NCBI GenBank assembly: GCA_002269645.1 | Contig: NIVC01000453.1 | Coordinates: forward strand, 100,709 to 164,708 | Source: Macrostomum lignano | Taxonomy: Eukaryota | Direction: 5' to 3' | Length of the DNA stretch: 64,000 nt | Shown here: in pieces, positions 287-20,210 of the stretch | Numbering within the stretch: position 1 is the first letter of the stretch | How the letters are laid out: each line of letters starts with the position of its first letter | Notes under the pieces: generated by a model | The model's database searches: none | Told to the model about the DNA's origin: nothing | Seen by the model: only the letters and a program-made list of their open reading frames with translations | Translations under genes and position numbers: made by a program

Positions 287-3200
287 CTTGCACTGGCAGA
301 AGTGCACCCGAATCGGCAGTACACTACGCGCCGATTTCGTGTCGTTCGCCGACAAGCTGGCATTGACGACAGCGACGCCAACAGACAGATGAGCCGGCGG
401 TGTCCAGCTGACGGTAACGCTGGCATTGCCAGCAACAGACAGCCAGGCTGGGGCGGAGTGCAGCCACACCGTGAACGGGTCGTCGTTCTTGTCGCTGACG
501 GTCACCGTGGCGGAGCTGTTGACGCTGGCGGTCACCTGTAGCAGCAGGCTGCCGTTGATGGAAAAGGCTGGAGCAACGTTCTCTGCAGGCGGGGGTGGAG
601 GCTCCGTTAGAGGCTTGTTGCTTTCTTTGGCGCTCTGTATGTTCTTCTTTCTTCTCCCTCTCTTCTTCTCCCCTCTCTCTACTTCTCCCTTCTCTCCTCC
701 CTCTCTTCTCCCCTCTCTCCTTCTCCCTCTCTCCTTCTCCCTCTCTCCTTTTCCCCTCTCTCCTTCTCACTCTCTCCTTCTCCCTCTCTCCTTCTCACTC
801 TCTCCTTCTCCCTCTCTCCTTTTCCCCTCTCTCCTTCTCACTCTCTCCTTCTCCCTCTCTCCTTCTCACTCTCTCCTTCTCCCTCTCTCCTTTTCCCCTC
901 TCTCCTTCTCACTCTCTCCTTCTCCCTCTCTCCTTCTCACTCTCTCCTTCTCCCTCTCTCCTTTTCCCCTCTCTCCTTCTCACTCTCTCCTTCTCCCTCT
1001 CTCCTTCTCACTCTCTCCTTTTCCCTCTCTCCTTCTCCCTCTCTCCTTCTCACTCTCTCCTTTTCCCTCTCTCCTTCTCCCTCTCTCCTTCTCACTCTCT
1101 CCTTCTCCCTCTCTCCTTCTCCCTCTCTCCTTCTCCCCTCTCTCCTTCTCCCTCTCTCCTTTTCCCCTCTCTCCTTCTCACTCTCTCCTTCTCCCTCTCT
1201 CCTTCTCACTCTCTCCTTTTCCCTCTCTCCTTCTCCCTCTCTCCTTTTCCCTCTCTCCTTCTCCCTCTCTCCTTCTCACTCTCTCCTTCTCCCTCTCTCC
1301 TTCTCCCTCTCTCCTTCTCCCTCTCTCCTTCTCACTCTCTCCTTCTCCCTCTATCCTTTTCCCTCTCTCCTTCTCCCTCTCTCCTTCTCCCTCTCTCCTT
1401 CTCACTCTCTCCTTCTCCCTCTCTCCTTTTCACGTCTCTCCTTCTCCCTCTCTTTCTCCCTCTCTCCTTCTCCCTCTCTCCTTCTCCCTCTCCTTCTCAC
1501 TCTCTCCTTCTCCCTCTCTCCTTTTCCCTCTCTCTTTCTCCCTCTCTCCTTCTCCCTCTCTCCTTCTCACTCTCTCCTTCTCCCTCTCTCCTTCTCACTC
1601 TCTCCTTCTCCCTCTCTCCTTTTCACGTCTCTCCTTCTCCCTCTCTCCTTTTCCCTCTCTCCTTCTCCCTCTCTCCTTCTCCCTCTCTCCTTCTCCCTCT
1701 CTCCTTCTCCCTCTCTCCTTCTCCCTCTCTCCTTCTCACTCTCTCCTTCTCCCTCTCTCCTTTTCACGTCTCTCCTTCTCCCTCTCTCCTTCTCCCTCTC
1801 TTTCTCCCTCTCTCCTTCTCCCTCTCTCCTTCTCCCTCTCCTTCTCACTCTCTCCTTCTCCCTCTCTCCTTTTCCCTCTCTCTTTCTCCCTCTCTCCTTC
1901 TCCCTCTCTCCTTCTCACTCTCTCCTTCTCCCTCTCTCCTTTTCACGTCTCTCCTTCTCCCTCTCTCCTTTTCCCTCTCTCCTTCTCCCTCTCTCCTTCT
2001 CCCTCTCTCCTTCTCCCTCTCTCCTTTTCCCTCTCTCCTTTTCCCTCTCTCTTTCTCCCTCTCTCCTTCTCCCTCTCTCCTTCTCACTCTCTCCTTTTCC
2101 CTCTCTCTTTCTCCCTCTCTCCTTCTCCCTCTCTCCTTCTCACTCTCTCCTTCTCCCTCTCTCCTTTCCCTCTCTTCTTCTCCCTCTCTTTCTCCCTCTC
2201 TCCTTCTCCCTCTCTTCTTTTCCCGTCTCTCCTTTTCCCCTCTCTCCTTCTCCCTCTCTCCTTTTCCCTCTCTCCTTCTCACTCTCTCCTTCTCCCTCTC
2301 TCCTTTTTCCCCCTCTCCTTCTCCCTCTCTTTCTCCCTCTCTCCTTCTCCCTTCTCTCCTTCCCATCTCCTCTGCTCTCTCTTCCCCTCTCTAATTCACC
2401 TATCTCCCCATCCACTCTCTTCTCAGTCCCCAGTCTCACCGAATTCATCCCTAACAGTTGAGGCCTCCACCGATGCCGTTTGAGTCGCCTGCCCGACGCT
2501 GGAGTCGCCAGTTGCGGCAATGTCAAAGATGCAGGCCCGATCCGTGCCGCAAATCTGTGATGACAGGTTGTACAAGGCCGAATTTCCCGCGAACATCGGG
2601 CCGCTCAGACTGTCGTTGAAGAATATCGGCACCGCGCTGACATTGTTGAACGACTGGCAGGTCTCGTTGGCCGCGTACACAAAGGAGGCGTTGTAGGGCA
2701 GCTGGCTGCAGTCAATCATCCAGGCCTGCGTTTGAGGTTCGGGGGTAAGTAGCTAACTAACTAACTAACTAACTAACTAACTAACTAACTAACTAACTAA
2801 CTAACTAACTAACTAACTAGCTAACTAACTAACTAACTAACTAACTAACTAACTAACTAACTAACTAACTAACTAACTAACTAACTAACTAACTAACTAA
2901 CTAACTAACTAACTAACTAACTAACTAACTATCTAACTAACTAACTAACTAACTAACTAACTAACTAACTAACTAACTAACTAACTGACTAACTAACTAA
3001 CTAACTAACTAACTAACTAACTGACTAACTAACTAACTAACTAACTAACTAACTAACTAACTAACTAACTAACTAACTAACTAACTAACTGACTAACTAA
3101 CTAACTAACTAACTAACTAACTAGCTAACTAACTAACTAACTAACTAACTAACTAACTAACTAACTATCTAACTAACTAACTAACTAACTAACTAACTAA

Positions 3201-20210: not shown

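Follow-up and report, generated by a model that had tools for sequence, protein, structure and literature searches.

The DNA analysed here (the window) comprises 64,000 nt of the Macrostomum lignano contig NIVC01000453.1 (assembly GCA_002269645.1, positions 100,709 to 164,708 of the forward strand) and very probably contains the 5' and central part of a gene for a giant mucin of the MUC4 family. The gene lies on the minus strand, to which all of its coordinates refer, and reads from 20210 to 287, where it leaves the window at the left edge. Its exon model was derived from GT/AG sites, reading phase and homology and describes a predicted gene with 14 exons and 13 introns, every intron being of the type GT...AG. 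The original prediction for this stretch, made from the sequence alone, had given the span 287-20210 and 13 junctions. The rebuilt model agrees exactly: the ATG is found at 20210, the last donor (GTGAGG) follows CQCK at 287, and the number of junctions, all GT-AG, is the same.

The coding sequence inside the window amounts to 4,594 codons, provided that six small deletions in the large Thr-rich repeat exon are bridged; the unique (non-repeat) exons comprise 933 codons with 0 stops and 0 frameshifts. The expected protein length of more than 4500 aa was reached only with this bridging. Similarly, the 'complete in-phase exon chain' proposed for the locus holds for the 13 introns, which are GT-AG and in phase, but not for the repeat exon, whose Thr frame switches six times as assembled.

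The first three exons are microexons of 18, 73 and 30 nt, which together encode MCKLAPATVRFRPGSLPRSATPSVLLALVTVLILVTASKA with a hydrophobic core of 15 residues, a plausible signal peptide. Exon 1 (20193..20210; predicted only) contains the ATG, encodes MCKLAP and ends at the donor GTAAAG. Exon 2 (20039..20111; acceptor CTTCAG, donor GTAAGG) continues in phase with ATVRFRPGSLPRSATPSVLLALVT, i.e. the n-region of the putative signal peptide and the beginning of its hydrophobic core, and exon 3 (19893..19922; acceptor TTCCAG, donor GTGAGT), likewise in phase, supplies VLILVTASKA with the end of the core and a possible cleavage site. A signal peptide spread over three microexons had been foreseen and was recovered here in putative form. 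As candidate TATA box, TATAAG (20334..20339) was read from the sequence ~125 nt upstream of the first ATG, and direct reading of the sequence between TATAAG (20339-20334) and 20210 revealed no ATG.

Exon 4 (8939..19793) is 10,855 nt long and encodes a region of the type rich in Pro, Thr and Ser (PTS), followed by a TSP1-like module. Its 3' junction (8939|8858) is also present in the UniProt entry A0A1I8ISB7 (P0023, 505 aa, 'EGF-like domain-containing protein'), an independent gene prediction which shares seven junctions with the model and aligns to it with 0 mismatches and one gap of 36 aa. Exon 5 (8718..8858), with junctions as in A0A1I8ISB7, encodes an EGF-like module that was aligned to the EGF of the Branchiostoma lanceolatum protein CAH1237975.1 (P0037). 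Two calcium-binding EGF modules (cbEGF) follow, the first in exon 6 (7808..7951; Pfam EGF_CA 2.7e-10, 40.8 bits) and the second in exon 7 (7502..7642; Pfam EGF_CA 9.2e-7, 29.4 bits). NIDO starts in exon 8 (7287..7417) and continues in exon 9 (6966..7184), both placed by splice prediction, by comparison with A0A1I8ISB7, whose junctions exon 8 shares, and by alignment to the NIDO of P0037; its middle is encoded by exon 10 (6146..6298, 51 aa), which is also present in A0A1I8ISB7. Exon 11 (4468..5286, 273 aa) holds the end of NIDO, a putative divergent AMOP and the start of VWD, exon 12 (3538..4005) the VWD body (Pfam VWD and tblastn of P0002 and P0009), exon 13 (2440..2725) the C8-3_MUC4 module (Pfam PF23263), and exon 14 (287..582) an Ig/cadherin-like module, whose final residues before the donor GTGAGG, C-Q-C-K, already belong to the beginning of an EGF-like module.

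The 36-aa gap of A0A1I8ISB7 corresponds to an alternative annotated acceptor at 5178, 108 nt inside exon 11. With this acceptor, 36 residues matching the C-terminal strand region of NIDO are removed and the Pfam NIDO match, which requires both the exon 6298-6146 and acceptor 5286, is lost. Acceptor 5178 was rejected in favour of 5286, because only the latter restores the match; the use of 5178 in A0A1I8ISB7 may reflect either an alternative isoform or an erroneous prediction. UniProt further holds mis-framed predictions (P0021 and P0022) from near-identical M. lignano copies. The expectation that automated annotation would fragment the gene was thus borne out by the 505-aa entry and these mis-framed pieces. 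Another M. lignano copy (P0092) is ~97% identical to the model, with 14 mismatches in 514 aa. A word-index homology search with the spliced model was dominated by EGF proteins and missed A0A1I8ISB7.

Three introns of the mucin gene consist nearly completely of simple repeats, namely (CTAA)x196 at 2753-3537, (AACT)x179 at 7982-8698 and, at 651-2362, 122 copies of a 14-nt GA/CT-rich unit. In the (TTAG)n intron, every unit contains an AG immediately upstream of the true acceptor 2725.

The Thr-rich repeat and its reading frame

Exon 4 contains two tandem arrays detected by Tandem Repeats Finder (TRF). The 24-nt array (11389..19793, minus strand; 350.7 copies, 94% matches) encodes TTTTTEAP or TTTTTAAP according to a unit census, and the 21-nt array (9169..11375, minus strand; 106 copies, 82% matches, 2% indels) encodes TTTTDGA or TTTTAGA. 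With the deletions bridged, the Thr frame extends over 3,547 codons without a stop (60.4% Thr, 15.6% Ala, 9.8% Pro and 6.8% Glu). The Thr-rich exon of ~3600 codons announced by the original prediction is therefore present as a bridged frame, but it does not form one open frame as assembled. The repeat region of ~3,540 codons, which is N-terminal of the globular domains, has the arrangement of a MUC4-type PTS, with the six frame-shifting deletions as assembled. In a stop-to-stop scan, the longest Thr-frame open reading frame (ORF) continuous with TSP1 and the later modules was 15149-8862 (2,096 codons).

ORF length alone was considered a poor proof of coding, because long ORFs over arrays are cheap in this window. 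Long spurious ORFs are common over its tandem arrays, and the plus-strand ORFs on the mucin array itself, e.g. 9124-15117 (1,997 aa), are artefactual, as had been suspected for antisense ORFs over the gene. The Thr-rich array might also be a non-coding minisatellite abutting the gene, with a protein that starts near TSP1 via another 5' exon or a trans-spliced leader. The abundance of arrays with long spurious ORFs would agree with this, a period that is a multiple of 3 together with one stop-free frame is trivially open, and the 5' part of the array is frame-broken. We nevertheless regard a non-coding array as very improbable and read the array as coding, because both arrays, with periods that are multiples of 3, give a Thr-rich peptide in the same single frame, which runs stop-free into TSP1, and because the diverged 21-nt array holds this frame for 735 codons without a stop despite its indels. 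Furthermore, a non-repetitive Thr-rich linker (...TTTTASATSTTALPPTTTTADPC...) connects the array to the TSP1-like module within one ORF, and the start of the array is a good acceptor, in phase with the three signal-peptide-like exons behind the candidate TATA box. Neither an ATG nor a signal sequence was found between array and TSP1. In relatives, too, the EGF or NIDO modules are preceded by a PTS, and it is N-terminal in those of sea urchin and vertebrates, which again points to a coding array.

As assembled, this copy cannot make the full mucin, since its reading frame is disrupted by six small deletions, all in the 5' third of the repeat. Each is located in an otherwise regular 24-nt unit of the minus strand; 1 nt is missing at ~18597, ~18042, ~17783 and ~15113, and 2 nt are missing at ~17504 and ~17146. 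The net shift is -8 nt, the Thr frame switches six times over 18597-15113, and translation from the ATG slides into the frame LQPPLKRL and ends at a stop at codon 629. Splicing out of the frame-shifted segments was rejected, since the repeat unit contains no GT dinucleotide.

We consider it somewhat more probable than not that the six deletions are uncorrected consensus errors of the long reads, i.e. an assembly artefact. Published M. lignano assemblies were produced from PacBio continuous long reads (CLR) with Canu and polished with short reads using Pilon (PMC5730564). Pilon would be unable to polish this array, because short reads cannot be placed within 10.6 kb of 24-nt units. The six events are without exception deletions, mostly by contraction of short runs (such as AA to A or CC to C), as in PacBio CLR consensus errors beyond the reach of Pilon. 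Some observations speak against a simple assembly error. The six deletions are confined to 4.7 kb of the 10.6-kb repeat (P ~0.007 under uniformity). The two 2-nt deletions are the same and are spaced 358 nt from each other inside a local block duplication at 17140-17780 (15 units minus 2 nt), which is the only stretch of the array with an identity of at least 0.97 at this lag; an identical deletion occurring twice in such a duplication is expected if one real variant was copied by unequal exchange or block duplication. An internal control of the indel rate did not distinguish assembly errors from real lesions: the 118-nt satellite has 2 single-base length variants in 11.1 kb, compared to 6 in 8.4 kb of the mucin array (P ~0.07), and the other arrays of the window vary as well, at rates that do not clearly depart from that of the mucin array.

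Alternatively, the frameshifts could be real. The locus would then be a pseudogene or null allele, disabled not long ago, and a near-identical copy elsewhere in the neopolyploid genome would supply the function. Besides the clustering of the deletions in the 5' 4.7 kb and the identical 2-nt deletion found twice in the block duplication, the out-of-frame nature of all six events and the end of the ATG frame at codon 629 are in favour of this alternative. A second copy (P0092) exists, and the assembly Mlig_3_7 contains 180 Mb of duplicated blocks at ≥ 95% identity (PMC5730564). The loss of one copy would be tolerable, because the genome is neopolyploid and P0092 is ~97% identical to the model. 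However, the unique exons are intact over their 933 codons, the bridged Thr frame is free of stops, and the restriction to deletions, mostly in short homopolymer runs, is the pattern of CLR consensus errors. A disabled copy is a possibility to be taken seriously, though not the one we favour.

Domains downstream of the repeat and their relatives

Pfam was run on the exon pieces and on the spliced model. The series of domains claimed for this part of the gene was recovered in part by this search. Above threshold were both EGF_CA modules, VWD (6.9e-5 for the exon piece, 4.1e-9 for the spliced model) and C8-3_MUC4 (PF23263; 8.7e-14 and 3e-12, respectively), whereas NIDO was marginal and TSP1, AMOP, the first EGF and the Ig-like module were not obtained by Pfam alone. 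The following results weigh against the proposed gene: the TSP1-like module stays under the Pfam threshold in the direct search (TSP1_ADAMTS E=0.0065), NIDO (PF06119) reaches E=3e-5 and 24.6 bits, 0.4 bit under the cut-off of 25, and for AMOP (PF03782) no direct Pfam match was obtained, neither with the pieces nor with the spliced model. In addition, a database search with the signal-peptide sequence of the 5' microexons gave no matching protein, and a search with the model minus its EGFs (two matches) gave no M. lignano protein covering the C-terminal part with EGFs and a transmembrane (TM) helix.

The weak calls of TSP1, AMOP, the first EGF and the Ig-like module are supported, because colinear relatives are Pfam-positive at those positions. 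The non-repeat model (1,003 aa) was matched to residues 2-1026 of the Branchiostoma lanceolatum protein P0037 in one colinear BLASTP alignment (E=3e-51, 24% identity). In the same order as in the flatworm, Pfam detects TSP_1 (2.6e-13), EGF, two EGF_CA and NIDO (2.6e-25) in P0037. The protein goes on with VWD, C8-3 and an Ig-like module, followed by numerous EGFs, a short PTS and finally a TM helix with a tail. The TSP1-like module of the model (8939..9137; DPCLTGFSYSDWVLESCSATCGSCLNIRRRQC...SLPECV) contains 8 Cys and keeps CSxTCG, with a degenerate WxxW; in the alignment, its positions correspond one by one to those of the TSP_1 of P0037, which is Pfam-positive. For the EGF of exon 5, a weak Pfam match was obtained (E=0.024). 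NIDO was counted as present, the model being colinear with the NIDO of P0037 in this region. For AMOP, exon 11 aligns at 1e-13 to the stretch of a unit of protein P0020 which Pfam calls AMOP (28.1 bits) and it keeps the AMOP landmarks CP, RCF, CCY and C..Y..YRP; the AMOP of sea-star relatives likewise escapes the Pfam model. These features suggest a divergent AMOP between NIDO and VWD. The module of exon 14 gives a weak match to Big_9 (E=0.04), and relatives score He_PIG or Big_9 above the cut-off at this position. A single-sequence AlphaFold2 model of this module was all-beta with low confidence; at a predicted local distance difference test (pLDDT) score of 50 it was too poor for a fold search and was not used further.

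At the start of VWD, the translation contains the motif GDPH (4531..4542, minus strand), a putative autocatalytic cleavage site of the MUC4 type. GDPH is also present in the relatives P0002, P0009 and P0020, and its role in MUC4 has been described (PMC8660890). A single VWD with GDPH, followed by C8-3_MUC4, is the arrangement found in MUC4-type proteins. Pfam and colinear homology together support the original prediction of a MUC4-like mucin with a block of TSP1-like, EGF and two cbEGF modules between the PTS and NIDO-AMOP-VWD.

Exon 11 (273 aa), used as query in an exhaustive HMMER search, gave 72 proteins, and three of the best matches are Macrostomum lignano proteins. The top match P0020 (7,101 aa) consists of ten SUSD2-like units and was found with E=8.4e-55 over 10 units; in one of these units, Pfam detects VWD, C8-3 and Sushi in addition to the AMOP mentioned above. 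Among the other significant relatives, the labels are mucin-4 for elephant shark, mucin-4-like for newt and mucin-like protein for sea stars, oysters and Trichoplax, besides SUSD2-like and mesh-like.

A close correspondence in domain order was seen with the amphioxus protein CAH1237975.1, a MUC4-family transmembrane protein labelled 'FBN3', which shares TSP1, EGF, two cbEGF, NIDO, the AMOP region, VWD, C8-3, the Ig-like module and C-x-C with the flatworm model. It differs in having GEPH instead of GDPH and a canonical TSP1 (WSEWS) instead of the degenerate flatworm one; its gene model, which may be truncated, is without an N-terminal signal peptide or PTS, and its own PTS is short and membrane-proximal. 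The Diadema antillarum protein XP_071486755.1 (P0075) shares EGF, two cbEGF, NIDO, the AMOP region, VWD, C8-3, the Ig-like module and C-x-C, and no TSP1 was detected in it; its N-terminal Thr/Ser-rich repeat of ~500 aa is ~7 times shorter than the flatworm PTS. Sea-star mucin-like proteins (Patiria, Acanthaster) have the series NIDO-[AMOP]-VWD-C8-3 in common with the flatworm, but carry LDLa, somatomedin B or HYR modules upstream. Vertebrate MUC4 (sialomucin complex) resembles the flatworm product in its giant N-terminal O-glycosylated tandem repeat (glycosylation in the flatworm would be expected by analogy), in NIDO-AMOP-VWD (with a putative AMOP in the flatworm), in GDPH and in C8-3_MUC4; unlike the flatworm protein, it is without a TSP1/EGF/cbEGF block between PTS and NIDO. 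In the relatives from shark and newt, the PTS directly abuts NIDO, as in MUC4. The Ig-like module after C8-3 was seen in the flatworm gene and its relatives among the invertebrates, which this comparison covered.

Coral (Acropora) mucin4-like proteins of the skeletal organic matrix, described by Takeuchi et al. in 2016, have NIDO, AMOP, VWD as well as EGF, together with an N-terminal TSP1, and their authors found this TSP1-bearing architecture in no other metazoan (PMC4890752). Compared by their published description, the coral proteins differ from the flatworm model in that no giant PTS is reported and in their location in the skeletal matrix (PMC4890752).

Other protein types were rejected. 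SUSD2 and insect Mesh share the AMOP-VWD-C8-3 core, the flatworm AMOP being putative. This type was excluded, since the flatworm protein has the Ig-like module after C8-3, where a SUSD2-like unit has Sushi, and a giant PTS. SUSD2 and Mesh are not known to have a PTS, TSP1 or cbEGF block, and SUSD2 is not known to have NIDO. A gel-forming or VWF-like mucin (three VWD-C8-TIL and a cystine knot, CK) was excluded because of the single VWD, the absence of a TIL or classical C8 match and the absence of a VWD upstream of the PTS; matches in the PDB were limited to similarity at the level of VWD, namely to FCGBP and VWF.

The gene had been supposed to be lineage-specific, which did not hold. TSP1 and three EGF modules in front of NIDO are also found in amphioxus, with solid Pfam matches in a protein aligned at E=3e-51, coral forms with TSP1 are published (PMC4890752), and the urchin protein has the order PTS-EGF-cbEGFx2-NIDO-AMOP-VWD. 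Since the colinear amphioxus protein and the published coral proteins share it, the TSP1 and EGF block is not an invention of flatworms; judged from the sequences compared, it is more probably an ancient trait which is missing in vertebrate MUC4. Tentatively, TSP1-EGF-cbEGFx2-NIDO-AMOP-VWD-C8-3-Ig-EGF...TM might even be the ancestral animal MUC4 architecture, kept in cnidarians, flatworm and amphioxus and simplified in vertebrates; we hold this to be possible rather than probable.

Predicted product

Entry of the product into the secretory pathway would be mediated by the microexon-encoded signal peptide. The repeat of ~3,500 residues would be densely O-glycosylated and form an extended bottle-brush with a length of the order of a micrometre, and the TSP1, EGF and cbEGF modules may act as a rigid stalk. 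The mucin-type core-1 disaccharide Gal-beta(1-3)-GalNAc is present on a M. lignano protein (PMC6410801). Cleavage at GD|PH would yield a giant mucin subunit and a smaller subunit which remain associated. By analogy to relatives from amphioxus, hemichordate and echinoderms, the smaller subunit would continue to the left of the window with EGF modules and then a TM helix, followed by a short tail. The product could then be a surface-tethered mucin of the epithelial glycocalyx, serving lubrication or as a barrier. The position of the C-terminal EGF/TM part beyond the window counts against this, so that the membrane tethering is proposed from the relatives.

With the 3' end outside the window and the TM segment unproven, a fully secreted glycoprotein without a membrane anchor has also to be considered, e.g. 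a component of secreted mucus or of an adhesive, cement-gland, eggshell or seminal secretion. The adhesive organs of M. lignano secrete very large repeat proteins with VWD, EGF and TSP1 modules (PMC6410801), and the coral relatives occur in a secreted skeletal matrix (PMC4890752). On the other hand, all longer colinear relatives (P0037, P0002, P0009, P0027, P0032) end in EGFs, a hydrophobic TM stretch and a tail, and GDPH cleavage would allow shedding of the mucin subunit anyway. The architecture is also unlike that of the adhesive proteins Mlig-ap1 and Mlig-ap2, and a fully secreted product was judged unlikely. Mlig-ap1 and Mlig-ap2 come from the same organism and are secreted proteins of giant size that contain repeats along with VWD, EGF or TSP1 modules, Mlig-ap2 being O-glycosylated (PMC6410801). 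Identity of the tethered mucin proposed here with either of them was rejected on architecture, as none of their diagnostic features, i.e. KR-rich regions (Lys and Arg) or 46 repeats of 255/221 aa, together with VWD-C8-TIL, LDLa and several TSP1 at the C-terminus (PMC6410801), occurs in the mucin model. They are encoded by separate genes, are without NIDO or AMOP, have VWD with C8 and TIL and follow another domain order (PMC6410801).

The architecture as such is common to other phyla and partly published, and the M. lignano gene itself adds a member. Nevertheless, the annotation of a very large gene of a flatworm model organism is corrected, of which so far only mislabelled fragments were available. 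Moreover, the TSP1 and EGF block upstream of NIDO-AMOP-VWD, absent from other metazoans according to the coral paper of 2016 (PMC4890752), is now found in flatworm and amphioxus. A MUC4 homologue in a flatworm amenable to RNA interference (RNAi) and transgenesis could help to study the functions of NIDO, AMOP and VWD. If the architecture is ancestral, this gene of M. lignano would be the first member among invertebrates whose N-terminal mucin domain reaches vertebrate scale, and would provide a tractable model (RNAi, transgenesis) for the role of the NIDO-AMOP-VWD module of MUC4. The locus also serves as a warning: for a 10.6-kb coding minisatellite in an assembly with frame-breaking indels, the intactness of the gene cannot be judged from the assembly alone.

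Neighbouring gene and further repeats of the window

Directly upstream of the mucin gene and on the same strand, the exons of an SH3-SH2-tyrosine-kinase gene (non-receptor, Csk/Src-like) were found at 24783-28454 (minus strand; Pfam PK_Tyr_Ser-Thr 3.5e-40, SH2 3.4e-13, SH3 weak). A 15-nt minisatellite at 23919-24744 (55 copies, 99% identical) approaches the kinase stop codon to within 40 nt and contains spurious ORFs in four frames. Two further minisatellite regions, 20826-21311 with units of 35, 69 and 104 nt and 21860-22604 with a 33-nt unit, take up the 3.5 kb that separate the kinase gene from the mucin promoter.

The 118-nt satellite occupies 52881-64000 and leaves the window at the right end; it comprises 94 copies which are 99% identical, two of them with a length of 117 nt. 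The arrays at 41310-41671 and 42619-43003 have the same 14/29-nt unit (CGACGTTTGCCAGC) in inverted orientation, ~1 kb apart, and may form a large inverted repeat or mark where a mobile element ends on either side. In total, 35 TRF rows were obtained for the window, a richness in tandem repeats which fits the 15% simple and tandem repeat content of the M. lignano genome (PMC5730564).

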